Assembly (NCBI GenBank): GCA_965285935.1
Contig: OZ260662.1
Location: 63,922,001-63,986,000 of the forward strand
DNA length: 64,000 nt
DNA from: Ophelia neglecta
Taxonomy: Eukaryota
Reading direction: 5' to 3'
The notes under the pieces were generated by a model, which saw only the letters and a list, made by a program, of their open reading frames with translations, did not search any database and was not told the DNA's origin. Below are positions 15,181-64,000 of this stretch, piece by piece; positions within the stretch are counted from its first letter, which is position 1, and every line of letters starts with the position of its first letter. The position numbers and the translations under genes are program-made.

Positions 15181-15370
15181 TGAAAAGGACTTAGGCCTAT
15201 CCACTGTAGGCCTAGTATTTGCTAAACTGAACATAAATCAACCATGTTTAAAATATTTTGAATAGAGGGCCCATGGAATAGATATTCCAAATTAAGACGG
15301 AAGTTGTGCCAAGCAAAAAGAAATACATGTAGGTGCAAAGTTTAGAAGAACAAAAGAAGCTCAGTTTATC

Positions 15371-15397
15371 CATAGATATGTATTCTCTATATCTATG
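15371..15397. mobile_element. 27-bp palindromic micro-element with perfect 7-bp TSD
   Basis: GTTTATC|CATAGATAT-GTATTCTCT-ATATCTATG|GTTTATC. Confidence 0.75.
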
Positions 15398-19684: not shown

Positions 19685-20106
19685 TACAGTTGCTGGATAA
19701 GGCCACCTAGATTTTATTTTTTATCTCGTTCCCTCAAGATAGGTATCTCGTTCCCTCAAGATAATATCTCGTTCCCTCAAGATAATATCTCGTTCCCTCA
19801 AGATAGGTATCTCGTTCCCCCATGAAAGGTATCTCGTTCCTTCAAGATAATTATCTCATTCCCTCAAGATAGGTATCTCGTTCCCTCAAGAAAGCGTGTG
19901 TCATGCATGGTTTGTTGAGCTAAATAGCAATATATATGTTGGCTAATTTAAGGAACTTATTAACTATTTTGAGAGAATAAGATACTTATCTTGAGGCTAC
20001 AAGATACTTATCTTGAGGGAACGAGATATTATCTTGAGGGAACGAGATATTACCTTGAGGGAACGAGATAAAAATAAAATCAAGGTGGCCTTATCCAGCC
20101 ACCGTA
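19685..20106. mobile_element. Foldback-type MITE with inverted arrays of a 20-21 bp subterminal repeat (TAC-terminal, IS3EU-like ends)
   Basis: TIR TAC(A/G)GT(T/G)GCTGGATAAGGCCACC. About 8 TATCTCGTTCCCTCAAGATA units on the left and inverted units on the right. No TSD recognised. Confidence 0.8.
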
Positions 20107-22410: not shown

Positions 22411-24364
22411 TTTCTATTAAGGCGTGGTCACACAGCCAAACTAGCACATAAACGCATGAATCACGCATTAGAATTTGGTTGTGCGTGCCTGTCCGTCGAT
22501 AACTCGAAATTTACCATGCAGATCGCATTGGACCTTACACAAACTTCGTCCAGAACCGACAACATTGTAAACCGCCATATGATCCGTAAAACTGTAAACT
22601 TTGAACACACCTACTCAAAATCTATAACTGGGTGACTGTAATGGAATTGCAGATATCTCACGTTCCAGGTATTCATTTCGTTGGTATCCAGTTCAATTTC
22701 GTGTACTTGTACTGACCTTGGCCCTCTTAGTCACCGAGGCGCGCGCACGCCGCTGGGTCAAAATTGAACAGCCAATCAGAGAACGGCTTGCCCTCGCTCC
22801 GGTCCTGAGTGGGGGTTGGCTTGAATGGACGCCAATTAGCAATAGGCTACAACATAGCATAGATTCAGCCAATCAGATGCATGGCGTGCATACTGAGATA
22901 AATATACATTGTCAACGATCTTCATGTGTAAATAAGTCATTCATTTTTTTAGTAAGTAGCATAGCATTTTGTCACCAAATAGTTTACCATCTTATTTTGT
23001 AATTGAGACAATAATAAATATTTTCTCAAAGAAAATTAGTAAAATTACATTTTTAAGGTACTACTTGCTTAAATGACAAGTAGATGGATGGTATTTACAG
23101 TGTTCAAAGGGGGTAAGCATATTCAATCGATATGCTGAAATCCGAGCTGGTGAAGGTGCGTTTGATAACTTTTATCCAATTGCTAATATAATTAGCTACA
23201 AATACATATTAATGAAATATCGCAACAAGTGTTTTTAAAAATATATTTTACTCACCTAGACGCTATAATGGCCGCTTATGGCAAAACGATTGTCATGTTA
23301 TACCCTAATAGGGGGGATTTATCCAAATTTGTCAAAGTTCCATTTATTGGCAATTGGAGCCCTTTTAGATGATAGAATAATATTTTTGTTTTTAAAAATA
23401 ATAAATTTAAACCACCCCAAAGTATAAGACTAATGAACACCCAGTTGGGACAACCACTTCTCAAACCTACCCTCTTTGACCTACCCCTGTGACCTCTGAC
23501 TCTACCCCTATGTGGTCTCAATATCCCTCATAATTGCCCTTGAATCCACACTCACAAATAATAAAACTTGCAAATTTACATAAATCTGCCTGCCACCCAC
23601 CCTAGTTATATTACGTACTCCACTATACCCAATATTAATAAATTAGCTTGATGAACTACCTAATCTGCTTGGTCTTCCGATCCCCTATTATCCTTGACAC
23701 AGTATGCACCCTAAATACCCCATACAACCATAATCTAACATAATTTCTTCTGGGACCACCTCCCGGAAATGCTTTGTCCCCCAGATATAAGTTTGAATAC
23801 CCCTATTGCACCCGGACATGCTATTTGAGAAACACCCCCTTCTGCAGGACAGGTGGTTTTTTTTTACCCTCCATATCCAAGACAGCTGTGCATCCCCCTT
23901 CCTGGAGGACAATTTCTAGAACAGCCCTTAAAGCATATTGGCCTGGGTAATTTGTTTGTGATAGATCGCGCCACGCTAGTGCCTATACTACTTCTTCTAC
24001 CGCACTATATTTAACAGGATTTATTGGATGAATGGTTTAGAAGCACATTCATATTGCCAGAAAATAATCACTTAATGATTTCTTTTCTGAAATTAACTTA
24101 CATTGCTGCCCTAAGCTTGGATTCTTACACCAAAAAATACTTTGGCTAGATGGCCCAGTTGATGGCACCCTGATGAACACACAACATTGAATGTTAAATG
24201 TAAAATATTGTTTTCCACTGAAATGTCACACATATTTTTAAACCCTTTATTTTCTTGAGCCCTTTACTTCATTCACGAGCAGGGTCAAAATCACGTAATT
24301 AAAGGGCCCAAGAAAATAAAGGGCCTGCAAGAAAATCTTGTAGGAAGCTCTAAAATGCAAATTA

Positions 24365-24543
24365 CAGTGAAACCTGTGTTTGTGGATACCTGGGTAGTGA
24401 GGTCACTTGTCCACTAAGGTCACCAAATAATAGTCTCCTCCCATTCTATTCCTGTATTGAGTAACCTCCATATTAAGGTCACCTGTATAATGTGGGCATT
24501 TAATTCCAGTCCCTTGACTGACCTGATTAGACGGGTTTCACTG
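24365..24543. mobile_element. Pogo/Tigger-like MITE (copy 2)
   Basis: TA|CAGTGAAACC...GGTTTCACTG|TA; homologous to 19053-19229. Confidence 0.85.
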
Positions 24544-24793
24544 TACATGTAAAAGGCCAGTGTAATCCTGTAAGTTGTGTTTTACAACCCCAAATATTCA
24601 GGGCCATGCAATAATTATAAGGGTTTTACAATACTTAAAATGCTTTTCTTTTTTAAGGTTCTTGTATCAAGCCAGCCAGTTGATTAGTCCATAGGAGTAA
24701 TGTGCCATCTGGCTCTCTGTAAGAACAGAAATAAAATGTCCCAATCCCTAATTTCTCTCAGTAATAATATTGATATCTCTGGAACATTGTTTA

Positions 24794-26589: not shown

Positions 26590-29500
26590 TTAGTATAATA
26601 AGTTATCTTCAACAAGATGAATATCAAATGTCTTAGACCCGGACAACACTAGATCGGTACTGCTGCTTGGAGAATCTGCAGAATCTGATGAGATTACACT
26701 TTCAAATGCAGGCTTTACATCACCAGTATTGTCATTTTGTTTCGAATTAAATATGGATTCATTCGAGTTCATGTTATGATTGGCAAGACGAGATGGTCGT
26801 GCCATTTCTTTCAACTTATATTGATCCGTGTCATTCAGTGACTGAAAGTAAGTTTGTCGAGTGTGTGTAATTTTGCTCTTGACAAAACTGTTTTTTACAT
26901 CTCCAATCATAACAGAGTTGTTGGTACATGTCCGCACAGTTTCTCCATTTGACTTTTCCTTATCTATCTTGAGTTTATTAGAACGACGTACGCAGTGAAA
27001 CAAGTACCTGATATCCCCACATTTTCCTAAAGGACCAATCAATGCACACAATGAGAGAAAGAAAAAGGTGGAAAATGACCAACTCACTGTCATGACTATC
27101 ATCAAAAAGACCCCAAAATTGCGGTAGCCAAGGACCCTGCCACCCATAACAGCGGCTCCTGCTAAAAAGGTTGTGAAAGTCGCCATGGCAACAGCCGAGC
27201 CTACCTTAGACATCGCATTGGATACACGCAATGCCCTCGTGCTGCCCACATCTAGAAGGTAGGCAACCCCATAGTGAATAGTGAAATCAATGGATAGACC
27301 TACAGCTAAAGTGATGGTGATGGACTCGAAGAAACCGAGCTCCCATCCTAAAAGGACTAAAATGCCAACTGTGGTTGCTATGATGAGAGCAATTGTGACA
27401 ATGGAATAAATAGTAATAAGAAAATTCATAGATGTCAACAACAGAACTAAACACCCCACAGCCAAAGACACCCCGATTCCAATCAATGTACCGCCAGCTA
27501 GCGACTTCTGGAGGTCATAGTAGAAGAAGTCATGGCGTGCTCCGCACCACCAAAAGTCTTGTAATTCAGTTGAAACATGCTCTTTTTCTTCCTGAACAAA
27601 TCTTTCCACCTTCGAATAAAAGTCGTCTGTTATGTCGTACAGAGTTGTCCACTTGTATGTGGTAGGAATGACTAGCATAAATGTTTTTATACTTTGTCCC
27701 AAGTTGTCATATATTGGAAATCCAACTATTTCTTTCTTCTGTGATTCGGCCAATAAGGTCATTGATGTAAGGATGTGAATATTTTGCAAACAAATTTCGG
27801 CTAATTTTTCTTCCAGTGGATAGGATAAATCACAACATGGGTGTATTTGTATACCTGTTGAATTGCAGGGTTCTCTAACTATTTCAGAGAACACATCAAA
27901 GAAACATGCATGCTTCTCTGGTTCAAGAACAAAATTTTGGTCCAACAGATGCAGGCATAATTCCCTGTTCTGCAACTGAGATGATTTTGCATAAATGTTA
28001 TAGTTCTCATGAAACAAGATAGTTCCATTGTCTTGAGGGTCTAATTCACTTCCTTTGTCTGAAGAATCAACCCCCCATACAAACTGAATATAAACGTTGT
28101 ATTGAAGAACATTTCTCAGTTCCAACTCATATCGAAACTTGTCCGTCATTTCGTTCCTGTACTTCTCAAAATGATGTTCTGGATAGAATACTTGCATTTC
28201 TGCTGATGTGGGCAATGTTAACTTTGGTTTGATAAATACAATAATTATACCTGATATACCAATTGAAAGAAATATCAGGACCCAGAAGTATCTGGCCTTG
28301 ATAATTATCTTTGGCAAGTATTTGTTCCAAAATTTGTTCGAAATATTGGTCAATTTTTTGCACTCACATCTGCAACAGGACAGTAAGTTACTTCTGGCCA
28401 TTAGCACCAATATTGGCGGAACAAACGTGATCATAAAAAAGAAATTCAACATTATACAAATGCCGGCGAACATACTGAAGCATTTGAGCGATGTGATGTC
28501 GCTTACATAATTAGCGAAGAGCGCTGCTGCTGTGGTGAGACTAGTGACTAAGATTGACACAGCACCGTGAGTTAAAGTGAGAGACGCGATCTTCTCAACC
28601 TCATTCTTCTTACCATCTTGGTCATAAACAAAAGAATTCCAGATATCAAACAGTATGAATACATCATCAGCTCCCACAGCTATACATAACAAAACTGCTA
28701 GGACGTTAATGAAAGGAAAAAACGGAAACCGAAATACCATAGCATAGAAGAAATAACCGGTCAGAATAGTAAATACCACCACAACAAGTATCACCATAGT
28801 CAAAATGAAAGACCTCATGTACAAGACAATGGCAATTAATACCAGGGACATTGCCAGACCATAGAATGGTAAATCACTGATTACATAATTGTTGAAAATT
28901 TGAATTTTTATCAGCAGATCCATTGATTTGGATTCTACTAGACCGTCATCAGATATGATGTGAACATTGTCTAAGTTATCTACATAATAGTCCCGGACAT
29001 CTGATAGGTCTTTGGTGGGGTCTAACCAAGAAGGTCTGAAAATGATCTGTGAATATGTTACTTTTAACTCTCCAGCAGTATCCCCATCAGTCAGGAAATT
29101 GATATCAGTGAGGTAATTAAGTATTTTGTAGACAACATTGTGCCGAAAACATTGCACAGGTAAACCTGAGCATTCTTCATTCAAATAGCAATTTTTTAAA
29201 GTTTCGTTGTAAAAGTATGCAGAGCATAGTTTTAGTACATTTATGGTATTGTTGACATCTTCTGTTGTGAGATCATTGCAGGTTTTGTTATTAGTCTCAG
29301 CAATATAGTAAGGCAGCGAGTGACCCCTGCAGTTTCCAACAAAGTGTGGGCTGATATATTTGTCTTCTATGCTACAAATGGCTTTCAAATGAGCCACATC
29401 CAATAGGTTTGCATCCTTGGTGGTGGCCTGAACTGCCATCCTTGGAATTTTGTTTTCTGCAATCATAAGAAAAGATCAGGGGTTTGATACCATGGTAAAT

Positions 29501-33500: not shown

Positions 33501-34586
33501 GGCCTAGGGCCTATGTCTATGTATGTATGTATTTTATTTATTAAAGTGACATGTCTTTCAATAACAAAGGATGCAAGTAATACATATATAAAAAAACAAG
33601 ACCCAACCCAACCTGGGTTTATATGTCACTACAGACAGATAAGTTGGAAAAAAAGTAAGCAAGGTCTATTGCATGTGTTGCAAGCACCCAAACTACACAG
33701 AATACATAGGCCTAGGCTAGGCCTAACAGTTTTTCTGAGATTATAAGCATCATGTATAAAATAAGCCAATTTTTTCTGACAATGTTTAGCAAGAAAAATA
33801 AATTTTTCATCATGGTTCAAAGTACTAAAATTAGGTTTAAATTCAGTTGCTGCTGAGAATAGCCTTTCCCGGAGTGCATGATAAAGTGGGCAAATACAAA
33901 CAAAATGTTTCTCGTCCTCTATTACACCCAAATCACAAACCTCACATAAACGAGCTGATAAATCTAAACCACTATATCGACCAGTTTCAATTTTCAAAGG
34001 CAGCACACCTGACCTGAATTGCGCTAAGAGACTCCTTTGAGAACGAGAGAGGAAACTAGTAATATAAGGTTCACAAATAAAATTTTCCTTAAATAAGACA
34101 TAAGTAGATCTACGTAATTTAGGTTTAGCCTCAAGACCAACCCTCCATCTCTGCTCCACCAGCTGGGTAAGCCTATAGATATCACTACACTAATATCACA
34201 CACTTGTTTTTCATCATAATTTTCCACAAGACCGAGAGTATCAAAAACATTGACAAATATATTATTTTCATGCGAAATATTACAGAGAAAAACTTGTTTT
34301 GTTAACCGATTTTGGTCCATACCTAACAAACGATTCCATAACTTTACAACTGCCAACATCCTCCTTGCACTTGGCGGTAACCAGCCCATGTCACCTTGAA
34401 TTAAGCATGAATGGGAGCCTTGGGAGGCAGGCCCAGGAAGTACCTGTGAGCCCGATATTCAACTTTGTCAATTTCAGGGAATTTACCATCTCCCCATATT
34501 GCAGCCATGTAATCGACAATAGGAACAACACAGGATTGAAATAATTTTTTAAAGGTAAAATATCCAACATCTTTTATGGTTTTGAA

Positions 34587-35972
34587 TTAAGATATAATAC
34601 ATCCAAGAGCTCTGCCACCCGAGTCTGCCAACAGCTTTGAAGCATAAATAAAGTCTAAATGTTCATCAAAATGAATACCTAAATATCTATAGTAGGACAC
34701 TTTTTCAATCAACTCATTGTTGTAAATAAACCTATATTCAGTTTGCTTGGTGCGTTTTCTTCTGAAGTGTACAACTTTGGTTTTGTCTATATTGATTAGC
34801 ATTCTCCACTTTTTACACCATTTTTCAAGGCATTGTAACATTTTTTGCAGACCCTCTGCTGATTCTGATAAAAGAACAATATCATCTGCATATAATAATA
34901 TTGAGAGGATATAGTCAGAGATATGAACACCAACATTTAAAGCATTGATTTCATGAACAAGGTCATTTAAATATAAATTAAACAATGTTGGCGAGAGTAC
35001 ATCTCCCTGTCGAGCTCCCGATGAGGTCATAAACCAATTTGTAAAATGATTATTAATTTTAATACAATATAGGGAATTTTGATATAAAGCCTTTATAGCA
35101 TTGTAAAATTTACCATCAATGTTATTAATGATGAGTTTTCCTAGTAACAAATCACGATCTACCCAGTCAAAGGCCTTCTGCATATCCACAAAACAGGCAT
35201 AAACTGACTCATTTTGTGAAAGTTTACGTCTTATTAATGATGATAATACATAGCCATGATCTGAACAAGATCGCCCTTTCCTAAAGCCATTTTGTTCTTC
35301 AACATAGATAGAAGGTTCCAGAAAATTCACTAATCTACGATTTAAAATAGAATCGTATACTTTCCCTACACAGGACAGGAGACTAATACCTCGGTAGTTT
35401 AACGGTTCATGCGGATCTTTGGCTGCACTCTTTGGTATTGGTGTTATAGTGGATTTAAGCCAAATGGAGGGTACAATAGAGTAATTGAATATACATTGAA
35501 ATAGAGACAACAGGGGTTGTAATACCCCAGGATTTTTTAAAACCTCATATGGAACAAAATCTATACCAACAGCTTTCCTGCTTTTTAGTTTTGATAGAGT
35601 CGCCAACACTTCAGAGGGTTCAATACCAGCATTTAAGTTATTGATATTGTTATTTGGGCTAACATAATGGTCAGTGAAAACTTTTTCCTTTTCATTTTTA
35701 AAATGTATGAACTCTTTATAAAATAATTCATCAAAACCATCTATGTTTCCAGGCTTATTGTAAAGCTTGAAGAATTCTTTTTCCCAGTGATCAAGAACAG
35801 TGTTGATGTCAGTGTGAATAGAATCATCAATTTTGACTTTTAAAGGAATATGTTTATGACTTCTTGGTCCTAAGGATTGAATGTGTTCCCAAAATTGTTT
35901 AGGATCACTTGAATTTAAATTTTCAATCTCAAGCATTTGAGACCGTCTATGTTTTTGTTTTGTTGCTAACAT
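34587..35972 (-). pseudogene. LINE ORF2 reverse transcriptase domain (disrupted by stop/frameshifts)
   Basis: 461-aa ORF with the YADD catalytic motif; continues in other frames at 34024-34389 and 33629-34159. Confidence 0.9.
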
Positions 35973-36000: not shown

Positions 36001-39000
36001 TTTTTACACTTGTCCTTACAAATACGTTCAGGTAGATGATCCAATACTGAGATAAGGTCCGATAAGTCACCTAACCTCGAATTTAAATCGCCACCAAAGT
36101 AAATAGCGTCAACGTCCTTGTAAATATATAACATAGCAATTAGGTGGGCGAAAAATTCTGTAGCATTGCTCCAAGGGGAGCCTTCAGGGGGCAAATACAA
36201 AGAAAAAATCACAAAGTTAATTTGTTACTTTGTGACTAAACTTTAAACCTATAATTCCATCAAAGGTCTTGTCAATGCACTTAACCGAAAATACATTTAA
36301 CACAGAGTCTTTCACGAGAATACCTACACCGCCTGACCCCTTGGGGGCTCGGAGGTGTTGACCATGTCTGTTTAAACCATACCACGAGAAGCCTGATAGA
36401 GTTATAGTCTGCATGTCTTTACTCAGGTGAGTTTCAGATAAACATAAGATGTCACAGTTCACATGTCTGATTATTTCAGCTCTCAAAATCTGATTGTCAA
36501 TGGTGACATTCCAACTTGCTAGGGACAGTGATCCAAACAGAGATTTAGTGGAGTGCGACTCCGGCTGGTCCCGGCCTTCTACTAGTGAGACTCTGGGGCG
36601 TGACGAGGTCCTGCGGAGTAAGGTCTTGGGCCAGACTGAAATCCTGGGTGATTCCACGGGCCTGTCTGGGGTGGCAGAGGATTCCACAAAGGAGATTGGT
36701 TAGGAGCTGAGTCAGGATGTCGTGGCCACAGAGATTGGGGTGGAGGGCCAGGAGGTTGGCCACCAGCATGATCATTGCGAATCAACCTACCATTGCCTGC
36801 GACTCTCATGTAATTTCCCAAAGGGAGCTCATGGGGCATGGTTTTAAAGTTAAGTTCGATGAGACGATCAGTGTGGCTTTTGGACAACTGTATAAAGACC
36901 TTGCCAAATTTCTTGTAATTCTGCAGCTTGAATTTGCTTCTGAGAACATTAACCTTTGTTTGTTCATCAGACAGTTGTATTTTGACAATACCTGATTTGC
37001 CATTTCTAGGCTGAGCTCTCTCTGCGCGAACGATCGGAGTGTCTATTCCTACACCTTCCTTAATGAGAGTATGGACTTTCTCAACAATTTGTTCGCCAGG
37101 CTCTGCCACAAGCCCTATAGCAATGATGGACACCTTGGGATCAAAAGGCTCATCCTGTATAGCATGTTAGATCGTTCACACTTTGTCAATCTCTCTGTGA
37201 TGGAGTTTAATTCCTTATCATATGTTTTGAATCTTGTGTCCACCTCAACCATGAAAGAGTCAAGTTGAGTTTTAATTCCATTTATTTGAGCACTTACTGA
37301 TTTATCAAGGCCATCGAGACGAGACTCTAATGAGGTTCTAAATTCAGATAACTGATCCTGCAGTTACTGCACTACACAGTTCTGTTATTTCTGTCCTTTG
37401 ACAATTTGAGATATAGACCTTTGATACAGGTTCCTTGCCGGGAGACGTGTCACTTAATGTTCTCTTTACCCTGTCCACAAGTGAAGAATATTGTTCAGCA
37501 CTGAGGAGTAAATATATAGTCTACAACAGATTTACCTCTTGAGTTAATACAAGTGAAATCATCATTTCCCAGACGACTATTGAGAACACAGCATTGAGAG
37601 TCTTTTAGAAAATTAATGAAAAGTTCCCCATAGGGATTTTTACACTTGTCCTTACAAATACGTTCAGGTAGATGATCCAATACTGAGATAAGGTCCGATA
37701 AGTCACCTAACCTCGAATTTAAATCGCCACCAAAGTAAATAGCGTCAACGTCCTTGTAAATATATAACATAGCAATTAGGTGGGCGAAAAATTCTGTAGC
37801 ATTGCTCCAAGGGGAGCCTTCAGGGGGCAAATACAAAGAAAAAATCACAAAGTTAATTTGTTACTTTGTGACTAAACTTTAAACCTATAATTCCATCAAA
37901 GGTCTTGTCAATGCACTTAACCGAAAATACATTTAACACAGAGTCTTTCACGAGAATACCTACACCGCCTGACCCCTTGGGGGCTCGGAGGTGTTGACCA
38001 TGTCTGTTTAAACCATACCACGAGAAGCCTGATAGAGTTATAGTCTGCATGTCTTTACTCAGGTGAGTTTCAGATAAACATAAGATGTCACAGTTCACAT
38101 GTCTGATTATTTCAGCTCTCAAAATCTGATTGTCAATGGTGACATTCCAACTTGCTAGGGACAGTGATCCAAACAGAGATTTAGTGGAGTGCGACTCCGG
38201 CTGGTCCCGGCCTTCTACTAGTGAGACTCTGGGGCGTGACGAGGTCCTGCGGAGTAAGGTCTTGGGCCAGACTGAAATCCTGGGTGATTCCACGGGCCTG
38301 TCTGGGGTGGCAGAGGATTCCACAAAGGAGATTGGTTAGGAGCTGAGTCAGGATGTCGTGGCCACAGAGATTGGGGTGGAGGGCCAGGAGGTTGGCCACC
38401 AGCATGATCATTGCGAATCAACCTACCATTGCCTGCGACTCTCATGTAATTTCCCAAAGGGAGCTCATGGGGCATGGTTTTAAAGTTAAGTTCGATGAGA
38501 CGATCAGTGTGGCTTTTGGACGACTGTATAAAGACCTTGCCAAATTTCTTGTAATTCTGCAGCTTGAATTTGCTTCTGAGAACATTAACCTTTGTTTGTT
38601 CATCAGACAGTTGTATTTTGACAATACCTGATTTGCCATTTCTAGGCTGAGCTCTCTCTGCGCGAACGATCGGAGTGTCTATTCCTACACCTTCCTTAAT
38701 GAGAGTATGGACTTTCTCAACAATTTGTTCGCCAGGCTCTGCCACAAGCCCTATAGCAATGATGGACACCTTGGGATCAAAAGGCTCATCCTGTATAGCA
38801 TGTTAGATCGTTCACACTTTGTCAATCTCTCTGTGATGGAGTTTAATTCCTTATCATATGTTTTGAATCTTGTGTCCACCTCAACCATGAAAGAGTCAAG
38901 TTGAGTTTTAATTCCATTTATTTGAGCACTTACTGATTTATCAAGGCCATCGAGACGAGACTCTAATGAGGTTCTAAATTCAGATAACTGATCCTGCAGT

Positions 39001-39139
39001 TACTGCACTACACAGTTCTGTTATTTCTGTCCTTTGACAATTTGAGATATAGACCTTTGATACAGGTTCCTTGCCGGGAGACGTGTCACTTAATGTTCTC
39101 TTTACCCTGTCCACAAGTGAAGAATATTGTTCAGCACTG
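36001..39139. repeat. Near-identical 1503-bp direct duplication inside the LINE (36001-37503 and 37637-39139)
   Basis: ORF track repeats at offset 1636. Only one substitution noticed (QLSKS vs QSSKS). Confidence 0.95.
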
Positions 39140-42100
39140 GCCATCTTTACAGTTCACAGCACCAAAGATATGAAGTTTATCTTAAAATATATTTAAAATA
39201 TACACAATTCCATGCAAGTTTCAATTGGTGTAAATACTAGCATGGATGTACTTTCACATGGCAACGCAAAAAAATGGAGCTCTTGGACTAACCATTTGTT
39301 CAAGATGGGAAATCAAAGACGGATGTGCCAATTGTTGCCATCTTTCAAAAAGCTCCTAAAGCTGCTAAATAATCCCAATACGAGGATTTTTTAGTACATG
39401 TAGATCTAATCATAATAATATATAAACTAAGTTATACCATTAAGAATACGCCTTTATTAATCATACTTCAAGCCATTTTTTATTAACTCGTACAAAAACA
39501 CAGGACGGAAAGTTACATAAAGGCCTAAACTTTAGTTTTAATTCTTCCACGCGTAGGCCTAACGTTACTATATTTTATCGAAGTCACTTAATGCAATTTA
39601 CAAAATAGCGTAGGCCTATACACTTGACTTGTTGAATAGAAAGTTTTGATATAGGCCTAATGGGCTGTTTTATTAGAAGTAATGTATGATATTCGCTCCC
39701 TCAATGTGGACCGACAGTAAAATAATAGCAACATATTTTTTATCATAGAAATGGGACGGAATACTTTTTACAGTGTTTTTCTTTGTTCCTATTGTTAGTA
39801 GGCCTATAGGCCTATATACTTAACAAATACTAATAAATTTTGACTTTAACTAAGCCTAAGAATAGAAACTTTGCATTGTGATGCTCTGTTGACTTTGTGC
39901 TCAATTTGATAACAACTGTGTTGTTGCTATGGTTAGGAGGAAGGAAGGGCTAAACAATACGAAGAATTAAGAATAAAAACAATTTCAACAATATGTATTT
40001 TAACAATCTGCTTTACTCATAAGGGGGTGGGGGTGGGGGGGGGGAGGATAGTCAGATTTGACTGGTCAGGTTTGTGTAATATATGGCTGTTACCATATAG
40101 GCCTAGTTACCACCCTATTATTTTAATAATTCAGTAGTATTATTAAGTGTAAAAAATCTCTCACTATTCACGATAGAAAGGTCAACAATATCTCAAATGA
40201 ACGCTGGAGTAATTCACTTACACTCGATACATGGACAATGACCATAGTAGGTAGGTATCTTATGAGCCTTATTTGCATTAATTGTGCATATTCGTTCCAT
40301 AATGATAAACAATCATTTAAACGTTTTCCAGAATTTTTAAGATGAAACATAACACGAAGAAACATTTATCTAATAAAAAATGGCAGTCTTTGCTAAAATT
40401 ATTCAAAATGAAAATTTAGTCTGATTTTAGAGTTTTGGCTGTTTCAGGTAACAGGTTGATTTTGCCTTATTTGTGGCATTACATAGGCTATTCATTTAGA
40501 CTTAAATAGCTTTTTATCTAGATATGTTAGAACAGTGCTTAATAATAGAAGTAGAGAATAACTTAAATGGTATGGCGAAGAAAAACCCTTTTTTTTTCAT
40601 TACCAGTTACTATTCACACTAGTCTTTAAGGCAGTTTGATTGTTAAATAAACTGTTTCCATTGGCGACATAATTTGCATATTTCTCGTGCTTTCCCATAG
40701 TAATTGGGAGAACTTTTTATCTAAATGACTTAGATAAGTTTGAAATTGCCCAAGCAAAAAGTGGTCCTTAATTATGTCTTGTTTTCTAGAAAAGGACTTA
40801 AGGGTAGGCCTACTAGTGACCAAAGAATGTTCATAATTATAGATATATTTGTAATTACAGGGTGCTGAGTCAACCATGGGATAAACCTGACTAAATAGGC
40901 CTATGTCTTGAACGTGTCAAAGTTACAGAGTGAAAAGTTCCAAATTGGGTGTTTCAACAAATGTTCTCTCTTTCTCAGGAAATATTTACCACTGATTATT
41001 GCAACATGCCTAATAAATCATGTCAATTCTTACTAATAATTGAAATACATAACTAATAATAATTAGTGGCATTCTTTGTTTACACTGTGTTTTTGCGCAC
41101 ATGTTGCTAGTTTTATTGCATGGGAATATACTCCATTCCAAAGAGATATAAGCAATCTTATCTACTTTAAATAAATAAAATTCTATTTGGTAAATACTTT
41201 ATAGGAACTGAACATCATCTAGTAATAAATTATGGAAGAATCCATGGAGATTCGCATTAGTAGAGATTTGATACCTGTCTTACTGTATGAATACATAACT
41301 ATGTAGGTCTTAATTTACATCGGGTAACAGTTTTTACTTTGCAAGTTGAAAATGACCAATATTGTTACCCCTATCGCTTGTTGCTCGATAACACCTGTTA
41401 AATCGATCCGAGTGGTTGGTTGCAGAGCGCCGGCAGCCGAGGTGGGGTTAACGCGGATAAAATGACCATAATTAGGTCATTCGGAATCGCAAATACTTCA
41501 CCGTTTGCTTGATATTACCTGTTTCCGAATGAAATAAAGGCCATGATTTCTCTTTCCCAGGTGCATAGTAGGCCTACACATTTTGGTACGCTATCTTAAC
41601 TGAATGTTAAAGCGTTTTTGTTTAGGATATACCTGTTGCTTGGACGTTTTTATCTTTGCAATCAGGACAATATTTGTTTATGCATCTAACTGATATTTGC
41701 TAATAGATGATGTTTTCCGATACAGCTATCCACTCTTTCATCTGCTCCTTGTTTGCTGTTCCTACCATTCTCGGTCCTTAAACTGCGTAAACACATTTTT
41801 CCTATAAGGACCTAAGCCGACACTAGTCCAGGCCAGTAGGGACTAAATTGTGCAGATTTGTCTACAAGTGCAAAATATGGCCCAAATGTATGGAACAGAA
41901 CCTTCTCTTTTGATTTTTGGTTAGAGCCGATACAAGCGCTCACTGGGGCAGCCATATTGGCTAAATCCAAGATGGCCGCCAGCCGGAATGCCAGTATCAC
42001 CATGCATATATTTGTTGTTTATTAAGCTAAATAAGTGTTATCAAATGGTTCCCTAAATGCTATCGTATTAAATTAGCAGGTAACGTTATTTTAACAAATA

Positions 42101-43354
42101 GAAAACATTCCATGGGAACATTCTCCCCACGTTACTTGGTAACGTTATTGTAGGTTACAAGTAATTTTCTTCATTTACATAATGTTACATTGTTTACTGA
42201 GGTAATGCTGGGTGATTCTAATGACTCCATTTTAGCATTGAGGATCTTTTCTTTGATGGACTTACCAGTTAATGCTTACGCATGATTTAATTTTTTTCCT
42301 GATTTATACAAATCCAGAAAAAAAGTGATTATTTTAAAGGAAAAAGGATTTATTTCACATATAGAACCGGATTTTTAAAAGTTTAAATATAAATGCTTGA
42401 GTATTCTTATAAACATCAGGTACAGAAATCATCAAAATTCAATAAAATGATCAGTGTTTTGAGAAGAGATTTCCACAATATTGGTCAGACATAATGATAA
42501 CGACCAATAGACAAACGCACACATACAACACACATAAATTCATTTCGGTAAAAATATTAGCAAATTTTAGAACCAGGTGTTACAATATTAATTACATTAA
42601 TTAAAATCATTAATTTTATTAATTAACATTATTAAATTATGTTACATTCCTTATGATATAAACTTTCAGCATTATAATTTTCAATAAGATTTCATCAACC
42701 GATATTTTAATGTTGCTGTATGGGCTCCAAAGGACAACAGTTGCGCTGCACGTGGTCAGCGGCCGTATCGGCATTATAACGTGTATTTGTAATCTTCATG
42801 TAAATGTTTATGCTTACAAGTGTACTAAATGTCAGAATAAATGTAATAAAGCACACATTTATTCAATACATTCATGCATACACATACTCTTAAACTATTT
42901 CTCCTCTGACCTGCCAATCAACCTTTTATTATGTCAACTGGAAATATTTGTGCTCTCCAAAACGTAGAGGAAAGTAAAAGGCTTTCGCCTGTATTGCACC
43001 GGTGCATTAGCCACTTTCCTCTCAAGCCGAATGCGTGACCCAATTAGACAACGGCTTCAGTGCCCAAGCCTTAGAAGGTGATTCGAGGAGTTGAACAAAA
43101 CACCACATGACAGCTTACATAATGTGGATTGTGAAATTGGATGTTACCACCTTTTTTGTTTGAAATTGCACTTTTTTATTTCCGTTTTATGTTCATTTGA
43201 CAGATAGGAAAAAAATATAAAATCTTCGATTTAAAAGGGTTTGGTATGTTTTGCAAATTTCTGGACTTCTTATTTTCGAACAAAGAATACATAACTTTAT
43301 CAATAGAATGAATACTTGCATTCGAGGGGTGGAAAGTATGGATTGACCATTGGT

Positions 43355-46300
43355 TTAATGTTGATAATGATATCTCCACGTTGTTGGATAGACGCCTGTG
43401 TACCTTCCTGACTGAGACCGACCTAGTCTGGGTAAACTCCCCACCCCAAAAGCACCCTGAGCTGGATTAACTGAATACATGGGATATATTTGTGATTGTC
43501 GAAGAATCGCTCCTCTTCGTCCGCTTTCGAAAGAATAATTTGAATTTGGACCATGGCTTTGGGTCTCCTGAAAGCGATGAGGGCTGTCGATGTTTCCCAT
43601 CTGGGCTTGGTAATATCGTGAAGGATCATGATCACTATTGTAATTATTGTGTAGCGGAGGTTTGAAAGCACGAGGTGTTTTATAACCAGGATACATCCCA
43701 TTCGGACTGTAAGGCGGAGGAGGTCGAGTTTGTCTGCTCTTACCCACGTCCCGAGCGGAATGTTGATACAGAACTTGTTCTGTCCTGGACATACGGTCTT
43801 CGTTTTTCTGTGAGTAAATTTTCATACACTTGCATTTAAATAGATACATTAAATTTCCTACGTTTCCTAGTGGTCCAATAAACCGGCAAAGAGGGAGAAA
43901 GAAAAACGTGGCGAAAAGCCAACTTATTGCCATACACGTCATTAGAAAAATACCGAAGTTTCTATAGACTACAACCCTGCCTCCCATCAGTGCGGCACCC
44001 GCAACGAACGTGGTGATAGCCGCCATTAGCAGCGCGAATCCAACGGTGGAGAGCAAGTCCCTGATCCTTGCTGATCTTGTCGACTCGGCGGATAGCTTGT
44101 ATGCAATGCCGTAATGTATGGTGAAGTCAATAGACAGACCTACTGATAGAGTTATGGAAAGTGACTCAAACGTGCCTAGCTCCCATCCAACTAAAACAAG
44201 TATCCCGATTGTGCTCAATATAGCCAAGCCAATAGTGAAGATCGCATAGGCAGTCAGAAATATATTCATAGAAGTGACTAGCAAAACTAGGAAGCCAACA
44301 CCCAACGACAAGCCGATGCCGATATATGTCCCGTCTGCGAGAGCATTTTGGAGGTCATAAAAGTAAAAATCGCGGCCATTCCACCACCCCTTGTCAAGGC
44401 CCCTGGGTGCCATACCAATCTCTCCCATGACATAATCATCGAATTCTTTGTAGTGTTTTTCCATTTCGCTGTTGATGTCAGACCAACTCCTATTGGACTG
44501 GACACGAATGATAAATGCCCTCATCGACGTGCCCGTCTTGTCAAAAATCGGATATCCTATTAGAGTCTTTTTATGCGAGTAAACCCAATTTTTTAAATGA
44601 CCTGAAAAATCGGAAGAAGTGGAGCATAATTTTGCCATTGTTTCATTCAACGGAAAGGTTAGTTCGCAGCAGGGGGCTATGGTGGTCAAAATTGTGGGTG
44701 AATACGGATTGGCGGAAACATTACATGATCCTTGTATCAGGTCTTTAAAGACCTGCATAAAATTGCGATAACTTTCGTTTTTTAATGTGAAAGGCTGGCT
44801 GAGAAGATTAGTTGTAAAAGTCAACATCCATTCCTGACCCTCCTGGCTGAAGAGGTTGAAGTCAGGGTCCAATTCGTAATGTCCTTTATCGTCAGGATTT
44901 AACACATTGCTGTGGTCGCCTTCCTTAACACCCCACATTATCACAACTTCCAGCTTGATGCGTCTCCGCGTTTCAATATCACATTCGAAATGGAACTCGG
45001 TTGATCTCTCGTGTATGTACATCTCAAACGGATGTTCTGGATAGAATAATTTTAAATTGTCAGATTTTGGCAATGTCAGTTTAGGAGTAACAAATGAAAG
45101 CACGATACCCCCAACACCGACCCCAAGAAAAAGGACCAGCCACAAAGGCCACACTTTTATCACCAAGGCTGGAAAAAATTTGTTCCAAACTATATCGGTA
45201 AATTGCCGCAGTTTATCAGAGCAAGGATTGCACGACTTACAAGGATCACCGCAAACTGCTCTTGCTTTTTCCATGATAACCATAACTGCTGGCACCCAGG
45301 TAATCATGAAAAAGAAATTGATCAAAATGCATGTACCAGCAAAGATACTAAAACATTTGAGCACAGTCACAGTGCTGACAAAATTAGCGAACAGTGCAGC
45401 TGCAGTTGTCAAACTGGTGACAAAAATCGACAATGCTCCGTGTTTTAGAGTATTCGACACTGTCCTCTCGATATCTACAACCGCATTTCCTGAATCATGT
45501 TGGGCATACTTTATCCATATATCTCTTATTATAAATACGTCATCAGCCCCGACCGCTATTAACAATAAGGCAGCAAGAAGATTCAGAAAAGGAAAGAATG
45601 CAAATCGAAAAACAATGTAATAGAAAAAGTAACTAAGCAAAAGGCTGAATATGACCGTGAAGAGTATAACAAAAGTAAGAACAATGGAACGCATGTAGAG
45701 AATTATGACAAACAATACCAGACCCATGGCAAGAGCATAGTAGGGAAGATCGCCAACGACGTAATAATTAAATACCTCAATGTCAAGTTTCATGGCACGA
45801 GACACGACTTTTTCATTGGTAGATGTGACTACTTTGCCTTCTATTTTGTCCAGAAAGTAGTCCTTTAACGTGTCAGTGAGCTTGGCCAGACTTGCAGACC
45901 ATGAATCCCTAAATATGATCTGACTGTAAGTCAGCGACCCAACTTTGGTATTTCCCTCTTTTAAAAAGTTTTTATCGGCAAGGAAATGTAATATTTTGAA
46001 CACCACATGGTGCCGTTGGTAGCACTTGGGCGGCATTCCTTCACACTGTCCAAGAAGATAACAAGATGACAGGGACCTGTTGAAATAAAACGGTGAACAG
46101 GTAACCAAAAGGTTGTTCATACTGTCAATGTCTGACTGGGTGATTTGGTCGCAAGTTTTGTTTTGAAGGCCTGCTACGTAATATGGCACGGAGTGTAGTC
46201 TGCAGTCTTCTTCGATGCTTTTAAAATAGCTCAAGATATGCATACTTTCGAAATCACACATCGCTTTTAGCATTTCGACTGTCATCAAACTACTATGGCC

Positions 46301-49300
46301 GTCGAACGCCTCTAATACGAAGGAGAAGACTTTGTCATCTGGTGAAATAAAACAAGGTTGGATGTTATTAATTACTGGTATGGTTTGATATTAAAGATTA
46401 ATAATGAAGTCTTCCAAAAGTTGGATCCTAATAACCCACCATCGATATATTCGGCAAGACAATCCAAGTGTAGATCTGAGCCGGGAGATCGCTTCCGCCT
46501 GGACGAGCTGACAGTTGGCTCGTTAGTCAGATTACCATTAAATATGTCTTCTTGAACAAGGTTAGCTGCTGCCAAGCGTCCCTGGATTGTCGTGCCTTTA
46601 GTGGCAAAACCCTAAAATATAGTAATATTTCTTATTAATGAAGAAAAAATATTTGATTTTCATATTGTGGAGAAATATGTTTCCCAGTTCCATGCTGCTA
46701 TATTATTCAAATATTTCTATTCCAATATCGACATTTCTATTTCCTATGCAATACATCAAATGGCAAGCAATTTTAAGAAATGTAAAAAGCTTATTCGGTC
46801 GAAACTTATAATCATAATGTAAAAGTAGAGTATGCAGGTATAAAAATTTCCAAGTTAGAGCAGTACGGTTATTGCTTGATCCAATATCTTCACGATGCAG
46901 CAAGTGATCTTAACTGCTTTCGGACTGCACATCTGTCGGAGTAACAAAGAACTACGGCAATAGTACAATATGTACTCCTTAACGGCACGTACAGCTGACC
47001 GCTAATTTTGGCCGTCCATTGTTATCCTGCTATGAACCGTTGTTTATATGAACTCTAGTGCATTTCTTATTCAACAGTATAATTCGGGTAGATCCATAAC
47101 AAAAGATTGAATTGTACAGGAGGAAATTTAAGAAATTAAGATACTAGTGTGCTGAAATAATATCATGACTATAGGTGTTTGAGTTAACTCCTAGGTGTTA
47201 TTACATCCATTATCAATAAAGGAAATACCTATATAATACTTCAGTAAAAATTTGAAACAACAGTTTTGCAAATAAACGTGACCTTTTTTGGGTTGTCAGT
47301 TGAAAGAAGGACACACTCGTTAAGCAAGGTGTTAATTAATACCTTAGTCTAATTCTGTTTTCATGGCCTGAGGTCAATCGAACGGAGAAGAATTGTCAGC
47401 AGCCTCAAAGTTGCATATTAAATAACCCATGAAAGGTACCGAAAAAATTAGATATCGTTTAACAAATGTAAGAAGTGGAAAAGCTTCAAATTATGGATGT
47501 CGAGGTCACGACATATCGAGTACACCCCATACGTGTGTAGAGGTATGTGTTCTGTTAGCCAACCACGCATAGGCGGACGTCGTGCGTCACTGATTCATTC
47601 TAGTTCCGGGCGAGGACAGGCTGAACATGCTAACATGGCTGCGACCGGAGGTCTATCCGCGGCCATTTATTACTTTAAAACACCCAGTTTTCAAAATGGA
47701 TGTAAAAAATTCCAACTTATATGTTTGCAAACCAATTTTTCCACAATATACATCTAAGAGGCTGGCTGCCTGTGGTTTCCCGTACGTTGACGGTTGGTTT
47801 AGGTTCTAGGCCTATATATAGTTGCTATTGTTGTAGCCTAATATCTGGGACACAAGAAACAGGGATTGGAAGGCGGTAGTGTCCTTTGATGGCATCTATC
47901 ACTCGCTATTGTTCTCGTGTTAATTATCTGTTATCTATCATCACTGGCGGCTCCTTTCATGTGATTACTTTCGTCAGGTGGCGTATCAGTTGCCTGCGGT
48001 GTCGATGCAGCATGTACACCAATATTACATCTGTCAAGTTATAAATGTTTCTTGTGTCCCAGCTAATATCTACGCAGTAAAGGCTATATAGTGGCTTTGA
48101 GGAGTCTATTCTGCACATCTTAGAGCTTAGGGCTAGATATGCGTCCACCTCATACTGATTTAACGTCTTAACGTCTTCAGACTTTCATTCTTTTTCTACT
48201 GTCCGGATTGTATTGTCATTAAGATGTAAAAGCGGTTGCTTTTTAAACTGCATGTGCACTTACATCTACCATCCGGCTAAGAAGTCATGTGTCCGTCACA
48301 CAGCCTGGACATAAATTCGTCTGTAGTCACATATTAACATAAGGCAGAGACCTACATAGAACTATATTAGAAAGACCCGTCATGGTATTACCTTTAAAAG
48401 TCATTCCTGTTCTTGAATTCTTTTTCACGTTTTAGTAATATAACCATAGTTATACTCATGTATATCCTATCTGCGTATAAGGTTTTCCACTATGCCTAAT
48501 TATAGCAATTGTGCACTAGTTAGATGTATATAGATATTATCATTTTTTGTAAAGGTAGTAGGTTCAAGGGACAAATAACCATGAATAGTAGAATACAGCG
48601 TGAGTATATAGTAAAAGTACAGTATTAATTTTTCCACAAGTTTATTATAATACAATACTTTATGACCTTAAGGTAAAAATGACGTACAGCTTTATGTTAC
48701 TTGATGTTCATGGTGAACATAGATGTTATTCGGGCCTATATACACTAAAGCAGGGGTAAAGAGAACGTGCACATGAATCTAGCTTTTATCTGAATTGGCA
48801 TAGACAAATCTAAAAGTCACCAATCTTTATTTTACCTGCAAATAAGTGGTCTTATTAAAAAAAGGAAATTTTATAAGTACCTTGGTTGGCTCGCCGAACG
48901 AGGGAATACCGTGCTGCCAGTACACAATTGGCGTGCAGATTGCCACCAAGAGAATGTCCGCTAGGATCACAATATACGGGAATTTGGTCAGGAAGCGCGA
49001 ATACCTGCAATGTGCATAGGGAAGAAAAGAAGTGTGAATTTGCAGGCGAATCGCAGTGGTTTTCGGGAGACTACATCATACGTTCTTTGGGGTAGTACCA
49101 ATGTCGGCAAATAAGTGGTGCCAATACTTCCAATCATTCTGGGTCTCATGCTCCGCTTAAGGCAAATAAAAGGCACGGAGCTATGGGCTAAATGAAGACG
49201 ATAGCGTGCAGCTACCCATCTATCTAACTATATTTCTATTTATATCATTCTGTCTAGCTATAGTTAACTCAGAAGTAGTCTAAACTACTTTTTGGCAGAT

Positions 49301-56494: not shown

Positions 56495-57130
56495 CTTTTC
56501 ATGAGTTTGCATTTGGCGCTAGCAGTAGATCGCTTACGTCACTGCATTTGATACTGTTGTTAGGGAGATTCCGTTCGGATGCCACTCCGCACGTCGCCAA
56601 TTGGCTGGACTGCCGTTATGACGTCTTAGACTAGATTTATCGGGGAATCCCTTCTATTCGTGGACTGGAGAGTTGGGAGTTCGCCATCTCCGCAACACTC
56701 TCAACAGTTGAAATTGAAATGAATAGGGCTTCGGAGTTTTCTCGATGAGTGTATCCGTTCATGTGTCTATGGTAGACTACTCGCCACCGTAAATCGGTAG
56801 ACAGTGCTTTCATCCGGGAATGTACTCGTACTCATAAACCAGTAACTTTTGGTGAAATCCACTCAAATTCATGAATCAGTTGATAGGCCTAGATGTCCCT
56901 CTGTTCAGGACGTGATAATCATTAAACAATCAGCAAACTCTCCAGTCCGTAAAACAGCGGTTGATCAGATGAAGGGATTCCCCGATAAATCTAGTCTAAG
57001 ACGTCATAACGGCAATCCAGCCAATTGGCGACGAGCGGAGTGACATCCGAACGAAATCTCCCTAACAACTGTATCCAATGCAGTGACGTAAGCGTTCTAC
57101 TGCAAGCGGCAAATGCAAACTCATGAAAAG
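56495..57130. mobile_element. Foldback element with ~160-bp inverted arms (56495-56654 / 56971-57130)
   Basis: The arms are reverse complements (CTTTTCATGAGTTTGCATTTG...GGGGAATCCCTTC). Absent from the paralog at ~33149. Confidence 0.88.
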
Positions 57131-60100
57131 CGAAAAATTCGGCAACCCATCTATACGACGTATATTGTAAGTAAATGTATAGCCTTCGTCTGCGTTTGGC
57201 TACCCAGGACTTCACAACTGTATTTCCGGCAGTTGCCATACGCCTGCGCTAGAGCAAGACAGTGTAGCTTCCAAGACCACACACACTGCACGGAATACCG
57301 CTGGAAATCCTGGAATACCCCCTAAAAAATGATCAATTTTGTCGAAACACCCCAAGAATCGGTACTTATAGTCTAATCTAGTATGTTAAGATGGCTTTTG
57401 ATTCGATTGAGGCTTTTCCCTTGGGATATATGTCATCTTTCACCAAATGTCTGTCCTCGGTGTCCGTCTTTTAGGCCTACTTAAATAAACACGATTCCAT
57501 GCAAGTTTCATTTGTTGACGTACATATTAGTAGGCTATGGATGTTTTTTTCACATGACAACGCAAAAATTGGAGCTCTTGTACAAACCATTTGTTCATGA
57601 TAGGAAAATCAAAGATGGGTGTGCCAATTGTTGCCATCTATTCAAATCCCCCTAAAGCTGCTAAATAATCCCAATACAAGGATATTTTTGTACCAACATA
57701 ATAATAAACACATGTTTATACTATACCATTAAGAGTACCCCTTCAAAAACTTCATACTATTTTTTTAATAAACTCGTACAAAAACACAGGACAGAAAGTT
57801 ACATATAAACTTTAGTTTTAATTGATCCACGCGTGGGCCTACTATATTTGATCAAAGTCACTTGCAATTAACAAAATAGCATGTAGGCCTATACTCGACT
57901 TGTTTAATGGAAAGTTTTGATAAAATGGGCTGTTTTATTAGAGGTAAAATATGATATTTGCTCCCTCAATGTGGACGAACAGTGAAATGAAGATATTTAT
58001 CACAGCAACGGGACGGAATACTTTTTCAAAGTGTCTTTTCTTTATTCCTATTGTTAGTATATATAATTAACAAATACCAATGAATACTTTAAAGACCCTT
58101 TAACTTGGCCTAAGAATAAGAAACTTTGCATTGTGATCGTGTGTTGAATTTGTGACAACAGCTGTATTGTTGTTATGGTTAGGAGGACGGAAGGGCTCAA
58201 CAATACGAAAATTTAAGAATAAAATCAATTTCACCAATATGTATATTAACAATCTGCTTCACTCATAAGGGGGTGGGGGGGGGGGGGGGGGAGGAGGGGT
58301 GGTCAGATTTGACTGGTCAGCTTATCTTTGTACTATGGACGTTACCATATAGTAACCACCCTATTATTTCGACAATTCAGTTGTATTATTAAGTGTAAAA
58401 ATGTCTCATTTGCATTAATTGTGCATATTCGTTCCATAATGATAAACAATCCTTTAAACGTTTTCCAGAATTTTAAATTTTTAACATGAAAGAAAGCACG
58501 AATTATACCTTATCTGATTAAAAAAAATGGCAGTCTTTGGTATTTAAAATGAAAATTTAGTCTAAATTTAGAGTTTTGGCCAAAAAAGCTGTTTCCCTGT
58601 CAACAGGCGGATTTTGCCTTATTTGTGGCATTACATATTCATTGAGACTTAAATAACTTTTTATCTCTATATGTTAGAACAGTGCTTAATATCTTATATG
58701 CAAGCCAGAATAATGCGCCAGAATAATTGGGAGAACTTTTTAGCTAAATAACTTAGATAAGTTTGAAATAGCCCAAGCAAAAAGTGATCCTTAATTATCT
58801 CTTGTTTTCTAGAAAAGGACTTAAGGGTACTTGTGACCTAAGAATGTTTATAATTATAGATATAATTTTATGTAATTACAGTTAGGGTGCTGAGGCATCC
58901 TAGGGAGAAACCTGACTAAATATGACTTGAACGTGTTTGCTTGTCAACTAGGGTATCAAAGTTACCAAGTGAAGAGTTCCAAATTTGGTCTTTCAACAAA
59001 TGTTCTCTCTTTCTCAGGAAATATTTACCACTGATTACTGCATCGTGCCTAATAAATCATATCAATTCTTACTAATGCTCGAAACACATAACTAATAATA
59101 ATTAGTGGCATTATTTGTTTACACTGTGTTTTTGCGCACATGTTGGTAGTTTCATTGCATGGGAACATACTACATTCCAAAGAGATATTAGCAATCTTAT
59201 CTACATTTACTTTTAATAAATAGAATCCTATTTAGTAAATACTTTATAGGAACTAAACATCATCTAGTAATTTATTATGGAAGTATCCATGGAGATTCGC
59301 ATAAGTAGAGATTTGATACCTGTCTTACTGTATGAGTACATAAATATGTAAGTAGTAATTTACATCGGGTAACAGTTTTTACTTTGCAAGTTGAGGGACT
59401 GGTCCAGAAAATATTGTTACCTCTATTGCCTGTTGCTCGACTACACCTGTTAAATCGACCCGAGTGGTTGGCTGCAGAGCGCCGGCAGCCGAGGTGGGGT
59501 TATTTCAGAGGAAATGACCAAAATTAGGTCAATCGGAATCGCAAATACTTCACCGTTTGCTTGATATTACTTGTTTCCGAATGACATAAAGGCCATGATT
59601 TCTCTTTCCCATGTGCATAGTACACATATTTTGGTACTAACTCAATGTGATAGCGTTTTCGTTTAGAATATACCTGTTGCTTGGACATTTTTATGTTTGC
59701 AATCAGGACAATATTTGTTTATGCATCTAACTGATATTTGCTAATAGATGATGTTTTCCGATTCAGCCATCCACTCTTTCACCTGCTCCTTCTTTACTGT
59801 TCCTTTATCATTCTCGGTCCTTATACTGCCTAAACACATTGTTTCCATAAGGATCTAAGCCGAGAGTAGTCCAGGCCCTTAGGGACTAAATTGTGCAGAT
59901 TTGTCTATAAGTGCCAAATTTGGCCCAGATGTATAGACCAGAACATACTCTTTTGATTGTTGCAGAGAACCGAGACAAGTGCTCACTTGGGCAGCTATAT
60001 TGGCTACATCCACGATGGCCGCTAACCGGAATGCCAGTATCACCATGCACATATTTGTTGTTTTTAAGCTAAATAAATGTTATCAAATCGTTCCCTGAAT

Positions 60101-60580
60101 CTTATCGCATCAGATAAGTTGGTAACGTTATTTTAACAATTAGAAAAACATTCCATGGTAACATTCTCCCCTCGTTACTTGGTAACGTTATTGTAGGTTA
60201 CAAGTAATTTTCTTCATTTACATTATGTTACATTGTTTACTGAGGTAATGCTGGGTGATTCTGTTGACTCCATTTCAGAACGGAGGATCTTTTCTTTAGT
60301 GGACTTACCAGTGGATGTTTACGCATGATTTAAATTTCTTCCTCATTTCTACAAATCTAGTAAAAGTGATTATTTTAGAGAAATAAGGATTTATTTCACA
60401 TAGAGAATCGCATTTTTAAAAGTTTAAATAAAAATACTTGAGTATTGTTATAAATATTTGTCACGGAAATCATTAAATTCAAAAACATGTTCAGTGTTTT
60501 TCCAGAATCTAAGTTTATCTCATAGATAAATGCACACATACAACACACATAAATTCATTTCGGTAAAAATATAAGCATAT

Positions 60581-63500: not shown

Positions 63501-63901
63501 TATCCCAAGATATGAATCCTTTCGAAATCACACATCGCTTTGAGCATTTCTACTGTCATCAAACTACTATGGCCGTCGAACGTCTCTAATACAAAGGAGA
63601 AGATATTGTCATCTGGTAAAAAATAAAACAAGGTTGGATGTAATTAATTACTGGTATGGTTTGATATTGAAGATTAATGAAGGCTTCGATTTATTAGAAC
63701 CGATAACATGTTGGATCCTAAAAACCCACCATCAATATATTCGGCAAGACAATCCAAGTGTAGATCTGAGCCGGGAGATCGCTTCCGCCTGGACGAGCTG
63801 ACAGTTGGCTGGTTAGTCAGTTTACCATTAGATATGTCTTCTTGAACGAGGCCAGCTGCTGCCAAGCGTCCCTGGATTGTCGTGCCTTTAGTGGCAAAAC
63901 C
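60581..63901 (-). CDS. DISP: Dispatched-like protein C (5'-partial; exons 63730-63901 and 60581-63612), recent paralog of B
   Basis: Open ~1010-codon exon highly similar to B, same splice sites, VAADDVF and GLSIDFTIHYG. Upstream exons lie beyond the window. Confidence 0.9.
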
Positions 63902-64000
63902 CTAAAATATAGTAATATTTCATATTAAAAAATGAAAATGCTCACCGATATGCAACAAGCCAATTCCTGCATGGCTAATTAAGGCATTACAACGAATAAT

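Follow-up and report, generated by a model that had tools for sequence, protein, structure and literature searches.

The 3' flank of one copy of a segmental duplication carries a series of six-base insertions, in each of which a single TA has become TAGGCCTA through the gain of GGCCTA. The duplication lies in the window analysed here, a stretch of 64,000 bases from a 762-Mb animal assembly (OZ260662.1, 63922001-63986000; G000:C2). The observation is real and stands well above chance. Most probably it reflects events of a known kind, excisions of a transposon that left footprints, here from a family that we did not find. In its specific form, that the TAGGCCTA motifs are Tc1-type excision footprints of a TA-targeting cut-and-paste element with GG...CC ends, we give this reading a probability of roughly 60%.

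The window holds three tandem intronless open reading frames for Dispatched-like proteins of ~960-1020 residues, with sterol-sensing and Patched domains identified by Pfam scan. Their nearest named relatives in a protein search are annelid proteins from Paralvinella, Owenia and Capitella, at 37-39% identity. Two of the three frames lie within the duplication, and the features are arranged as follows.

26590-29466, minus strand: Dispatched-like open reading frame
43355-46288, minus strand: Dispatched-like open reading frame
60581-63631, minus strand: Dispatched-like open reading frame
39196-46647: copy A of the segmental duplication, comprising the Dispatched-like SSD frame at 43355-46288 and its 3' flank (self-BLAST, Pfam scan, protein search)
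57483-63938: copy B of the segmental duplication, comprising the frame at 60581-63631 and showing the unscarred state at most sites (self-BLAST, MAFFT alignment of A and B)

By self-BLAST the two copies are 94% identical in the reading frame and only 80-86% identical in the 3' flank, which is built from old interspersed repeats. Divergence by substitution is 15% over 39200-40560, 11% over 40695-42590 and 4.8% in the reading frame. A preliminary description of this DNA had taken the duplication to be recent; the 11-15% substitutions in the flank indicate that it is old. Both copies retain a G-rich tract (GGGGGTGGGGG..., at 40023-40044 and 58269-58291). Outside the duplication, a 1503-base direct repeat (36001-37503 and 37637-39139, 99.9% identical, with a spacer of 133 bases) directly follows a reverse-transcriptase reading frame on the minus strand (34587-35972).

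Insertion sites, which we refer to as scars, were called from a MAFFT alignment of A against B together with the raw sequence. Other genomic copies of the flank repeats (L004-L028), which are ~70% identical, served as outgroups.

39395-39408: TACATGTAGATCTA, a net gain of ~10 bases relative to B and ten outgroup copies, with further changes adjoining
39520-39527: A-only scar, now AAGGCCTA and one base off the motif; six bases absent from B and ten outgroup copies
39554-39561: scar shared by A and B, mutated to TGGGCCTA in B; outgroups without the scar
39560-39567: TAACGTTA, ACGTTA gained in A, at the TA on the right side of the shared scar at 39554 (A/B alignment, outgroups)
39611-39618, at 57884 in B: shared scar; outgroups without the scar
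39652-39659: A-only TAGGCCTA, with exactly one TA in outgroup L020 (A/B alignment, outgroups)
39799-39806 and 39807-39814: two adjoining A-only scars, TAGGCCTATAGGCCTA, at a plain TA run in B (A/B alignment, outgroups)
40098-40105: A-only TAGGCCTA (A/B alignment, outgroups)
40484-40490: A-only TAGGCTA, the five-base variant (A/B alignment, outgroups, Logan contig)
40805-40812: A-only TAGGCCTA (A/B alignment, outgroups, Logan contigs)
40896-40903: A-only TAGGCCTA (outgroups, Logan contigs)
41569-41576: A-only TAGGCCTA (A/B alignment, outgroups)
57531-57537: TAGGCTA, the five-base variant and the sole B-specific event (A/B alignment)

Every GGCCTA insertion that the preliminary description had placed in copy A and found absent from B is borne out by the alignment, as are its GGCTA variants in A (40484) and B (57531) and its ACGTTA in A (39560). 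Counting the sites at which bases have been added to a single ancestral TA, 10 are specific to A, 1 is specific to B and 2 are shared. At 39395-39408, read earlier as CATGTA followed by GATCTA, the net gain of ~10 bases stands; given the neighbouring changes, TACATGTAGATCTA is only probably a pair of stacked scars from other families, CATG and GATC.

None of the outgroup copies has the added bases at any of the sites, where a single TA is mostly found instead; this identifies the events as insertions in A and not deletions in B. Because the outgroups also lack both shared scars, the insertions at 39554 and 39611 predate the duplication. Polarisation with outgroups, suggested in the preliminary description, thus agrees with its account of independent, stereotyped insertions that are not products of slippage: the added bases are derived, they sit at TA, and the ancestral sites have no GGCC. 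The scars are heritable, some being common to both paralogues and since mutated. Logan contigs assembled from public runs of one sample, possibly the source sample of the assembly itself, match 40285-40981 without difference, including three scars. A consensus artefact, which the preliminary description had considered, is countered by the occurrence of these scars in independently built contigs, and this match, taken together with the shared and mutated scars, excludes an assembly artefact. One Logan contig reads empty at 39652 and may derive from the paralogous repeat L020 (92% over 60 bases). No indels are listed in the contigs from this one sample, and neither in these contigs nor between A and B did we see an element-bearing allele or paralogue at a site that is scarred elsewhere.

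These observations also bear on a trivial origin of the motif, through selection for a palindromic binding site, slippage, deletions in B, or sequencing or assembly error. Slippage is conceivable for some stacked scars, as the stacked form TAGGCCTAGGCCTA is also a six-base tandem repeat; it cannot make a first copy where the ancestral site is without GGCC. The outgroups give insertion in A, the scars recur in separately assembled contigs, some are shared between paralogues and have mutated, and the sites lie in dead repeats with no common flank. A trivial origin is therefore largely refuted by the outgroups, the Logan contigs and the flank comparison, and we regard it as very improbable.

The scars are clustered. 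A density of nine in 2.2 kb never arose in 5,000 permutations over TA sites, and ten neighbour gaps of at most 200 bases were found against 2.3 expected (p = 5e-5). Ten lineage events fall on A against one on B (binomial p = 0.012), so that B is nearly scar-free. The A flank has gained ~1 scar for every 16 substitutions, an approximate value resting on the assumption that half of the ~330 differences arose on A. This ten-to-one asymmetry, together with the presence of other motifs in the same stretch of A (ACGT, and probably CATG and GATC), indicates a local insertion hot spot, and the scar density of the A flank points to such a hot spot acting over a long time and not to a genome-wide burst. 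An unusually intense cycle of insertion and excision since a recent duplication, as proposed in the preliminary description, does not fit an old duplication with one nearly scar-free copy. The 3' flank of A may instead have been a preferred insertion target, for example through open chromatin in germ cells. Clustered scars are also found elsewhere in the window.

13595-13668: second hot spot, three TAGGCCTA in 74 bases, followed by a half-scar CCTA
33707-33725: triple stack TAGGCCTAGGCTAGGCCTA

Across the genome there are 642 stacked TAGGCCTAGGCCTA, scattered throughout, against ~77 expected from random re-hits, an excess of about 8 times. Part of this excess may come from hot spots or from slippage of the six-base unit, and it also agrees with renewed insertion at, or close to, earlier donor sites.

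The motif is both abundant and specific. The window contains 30 copies of TAGGCCTA against 0.78 expected from base composition, making it the most enriched 8-mer that is not a homopolymer. Among forms of the type TA-Gn-Cm-TA only n = m = 2 (the same 30) stands out in the window, the rest remaining at background, and among palindromes of the type XYGGCCX'Y' only those with TA flanks do so. The genome as a whole has 69,501 copies of TAGGCCTA and 3,592 of its reversed control; because this control contains CpG, the ~9,000 copies expected from composition make a fairer comparison. Some of the genome-wide copies are products of amplification and not separate events, since each unit of the satellite arrays at G000:C1:639363-664293, which have a 40-base period, includes one TAGGCCTA. 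Minor forms are all rare: these are TAGGCTA, seen in A and B, the half-scars TAGGCCTACCTA and TAGGTAGGCCTA beside full scars, and the 9-mers TAGG[G/C]CCTA, which are enriched over those with A/T centres. Beyond the TA, the flanks show a weak A/T preference and neither a common sequence nor a fixed third base. A weak A/T preference around the TA is usual for Tc1/mariner targets. In the literature that we searched we found nothing relevant to the TAGGCCTA motif or to footprints on a genome-wide scale.

Excision of Tc1-type elements leaves TA, two terminal bases from each end of the element, complementary to each other, and TA again (TA + NN + N'N' + TA). The sites described here have this form: the extra bases have TA on both sides, and where B or the outgroups have one TA, A has TA-GGCC-TA; the insertion is derived relative to the ancestor at all sites; and the minor classes that imperfect repair would produce are present, all of them rare. 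We infer the existence, past or present, of a GG...CC element and its cut geometry as follows. The element would insert at a TA, which is duplicated; on excision the transposase would cut one strand a few bases inside the element, so that the flanks keep TA and the terminal bases with a 3' overhang; and host end-joining would then close the break to give TA-GG-CC-TA. In one version, modelled on Tc1, whose footprint is TACATGTA, the ends would be GG...CC and the overhangs of a 2-base stagger would be filled in. In the other, with GGCC...GGCC ends, the stagger would be one of 4 bases, as in Minos, leaving self-complementary overhangs that could be joined by simple ligation; this would explain the uniformity of the scars.

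The likeness to the Tc1 footprint is close. On the proposed mechanism the TA is duplicated and two bases are kept from each end, as for Tc1, and in both cases the product is a palindromic 8-mer and the net gain is six bases. The present genome also has an excess of TACATGTA (117,701 against 63,683 for a CpG-free control, an excess of ~54,000) and resident TA-flanked elements with CAGT ends, namely a MITE at 24363-24545 and Tc1-like families. By analogy, this pairing fits a derivation of TAGGCCTA from GG...CC ends. The preliminary description had held that each motif is the scar of a different TA-targeting family and that CA...TG MITEs exist in the window. The second point is supported by the MITE at 24363-24545; the first fits the TACATGTA excess with its CAGT-ended parents, whereas for TAGGCCTA the GG...CC parent was not found. 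The scars differ from Tc1 footprints in their GGCC filler, in the missing parent, in scale (~70,000), in uniformity and in their clustering and stacking. We know of no Tc1/mariner family that would yield a GGCC filler, and none of the families found here would do so. The footprints known for Tc1, mariner and Sleeping Beauty are less uniform than TAGGCCTA, and the near-absence of variant footprints is a counterpoint to the footprint reading. The six-base footprint of the Minos type, made of four terminal bases and TA, shares the net gain of six bases at TA; the difference is that the ends of Minos are not self-complementary and that it leaves two footprint forms.

Structural scans of the window, of ~300 kb from other loci of this genome and of ~168 kb from other species gave no TA-flanked GG...CC inverted ends, in agreement with the preliminary description, which had seen no such parent. 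The search that it recommended, for TA-flanked families with GG...CC inverted ends and a transposase, likewise returned none among the families whose ends were read. TAGG and TAGGCC show no enrichment in the window outside the scars, so the parent is rare despite 30 scars, whereas the CA...TG scars have visible parents. A GG...CC parent may be rare, with few copies that made many hops, it may be extinct, or it may belong to families whose ends are unread; either few copies with many hops or extinction would explain its rarity.

Several candidates in the window and beyond were rejected as parents. The segment at 56561-57064 belongs to the interior of a longer inverted repeat, L086:4220-7538 is likewise enclosed in a longer one, and the inverted ends of 19698-20093 reach past the TA. 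A MITE of ~400 bases at 19690-20100 has arrays of subterminal repeats, each repeat 21-22 bases long (TCTCGTTCCCTCAAGATA...), in its two arms. Of the units that we saw, one alone is both abundant and GG...CC-ended, a 516-base unit (16520-17035) with 18-base inverted ends, GGTTGCAG...CTGCAACC, and at least 963 candidate copies genome-wide. Its copies (16520-18447 in the window; L068-L081) are 98-100% identical and recur with a 1412-base period, and those at the start of an array often have TA at the left. This unit was rejected as it lies in 1412-base tandem arrays and its flanks are not consistent TA duplications. A TA-flanked element of 1.26 kb at 14596-15858, whose inverted ends are at least 24 bases long (TAGCGGTATATCGGACC...), contains two TAGGCCTA and one TACATGTA.

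Among transposase families, those of the Harbinger type (PF13359) are very abundant and young, and the transposons look recently active. Two families were examined, Ha and Hb, on several chromosomes (L029-L040), with copies ~99% identical within each family and intact reading frames of ~530 residues. The Ha loci stop short of the element end, and the Ha consensus contains two TAGGCCTA; Hb, the only family with a readable end, has a TAA duplication and GCGAG ends and was rejected as the parent. PIF/Harbinger elements duplicate TWA, three bases, and as a source they do not match a gain of exactly six bases at a two-base TA with no fixed third base. Inverted ends that usually start with GG are a feature of the PHIS superfamily, which includes ISL2EU and PIF/Harbinger, and ISL2EU duplicates AT at an A|AT|T target (PMC4482050). 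These groups thus resemble the expected parent in their GG-starting ends, and the Harbinger type in its abundance and youth here, and differ from it in their target duplications, AT for ISL2EU and TWA for Harbinger against the TA of the scars; ISL2EU was rejected on this ground, and the count of ATGGCCAT in the window is 0.

Around the 24 best matches to Tc1-like transposases (PF13358) there are no bracketing inverted repeats; the two readable family ends are of the CAGT type, and these families were rejected as parents. Classical mariner transposase (PF01359) has no matches in the genome. Pogo-like DDE_1 transposases (PF03184) have at least 150 matches genome-wide, many with open frames of 300-700 residues. 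Hairpin footprints of the hAT/RAG type (P nucleotides) have a palindromic filler copied from the flanking host bases; this origin was rejected as the filler here is always GGCC regardless of the flank.

The missing parent, set beside ~66,000 excess scars, speaks for a TA-directed process that needs no resident transposon, for example TA cleavage by a domesticated transposase or nuclease, followed by a stereotyped, templated fill-in of GGCC. The extreme uniformity of the product, the re-hitting of old scars ~8 times more often than random and the occurrence of several scars within tens of bases (13595-13668) would all suit such a process. To our knowledge, however, there is no enzymatic process that adds a fixed filler at TA, and the flanks offer no template for a constant GGCC. 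Furthermore, TACATGTA behaves alike in the same genomes and has parents with matching ends, and a GG...CC parent may lie among the pogo-like families, which have at least 150 reading frames. The data can be accounted for without an undescribed TA-directed insertion process, and we consider a transposon-free origin unlikely. The more particular proposal of an enzyme, host-encoded or domesticated, that writes a constant GGCC at TA and acts as a hot-spot mutator common to several annelid-like species, we hold to be improbable.

The parent could also be missing from a chromosome-scale assembly if the elements were confined to the germline and removed from the body-cell DNA that was sequenced, and removal of this kind is in keeping with the uniform scars. 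Against this, the scars acquire mutations as any other DNA does (AAGGCCTA at 39520, TGGGCCTA in B) and occur inside amplified repeats (the Ha Harbinger family, the 40-base satellites), so they were already present in germline DNA when these repeats multiplied. We therefore think germline-only elements a highly unlikely source, and favour excision footprints of a GG...CC element.

Contigs from other species were picked from public assemblies by the Dispatched-like homologues that they encode, and counts of the two motifs, with the expected numbers, are given below.

ERZ25069859, 45.5 kb: TAGGCCTA 6 (0.56 expected); TACATGTA 5 (1.44 expected)
ERZ24900295, 22.7 kb: TAGGCCTA 3 (0.22 expected); TACATGTA 7 (0.84 expected)
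ERZ25069296, 22.9 kb: TAGGCCTA 2 (0.29 expected); TACATGTA 12 (0.69 expected)
ERZ21939214, 22.9 kb: TAGGCCTA 1 (0.31 expected); TACATGTA 1 (0.58 expected)
Paralvinella GCA_025642065, 16.9 kb: TAGGCCTA 0 (0.23 expected); TACATGTA 1 (0.45 expected)
ERZ22147071, 22.6 kb: TAGGCCTA 0 (0.25 expected); TACATGTA 2 (0.79 expected)
ERZ25084518, 15.4 kb: TAGGCCTA 0 (0.22 expected); TACATGTA 0 (0.37 expected)

In these small samples TAGGCCTA is in excess in contigs from three other species, which also show an excess of TACATGTA. The protein encoded by ERZ25069859 shares only 42% identity with its best match in this genome, and the contig therefore comes from a different species. On these small samples, TAGGCCTA is not private to this genome. 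With 12 TACATGTA in 22.9 kb, ERZ25069296 (L082) is also dense in Tc1-type scars.

If the scars are footprints, they record ~66,000 fixed events of insertion and excision by a family of which hardly any other trace is left, and they would provide a gauge of past cut-and-paste activity, of germline insertion hot spots and of the fidelity of end-joining in an annelid-like lineage. The missing parent is a concrete and answerable question, and the contigs from other species widen the range of genomes in which to look for it. Should no parent exist, a new kind of sequence-specific mutational process would become possible.
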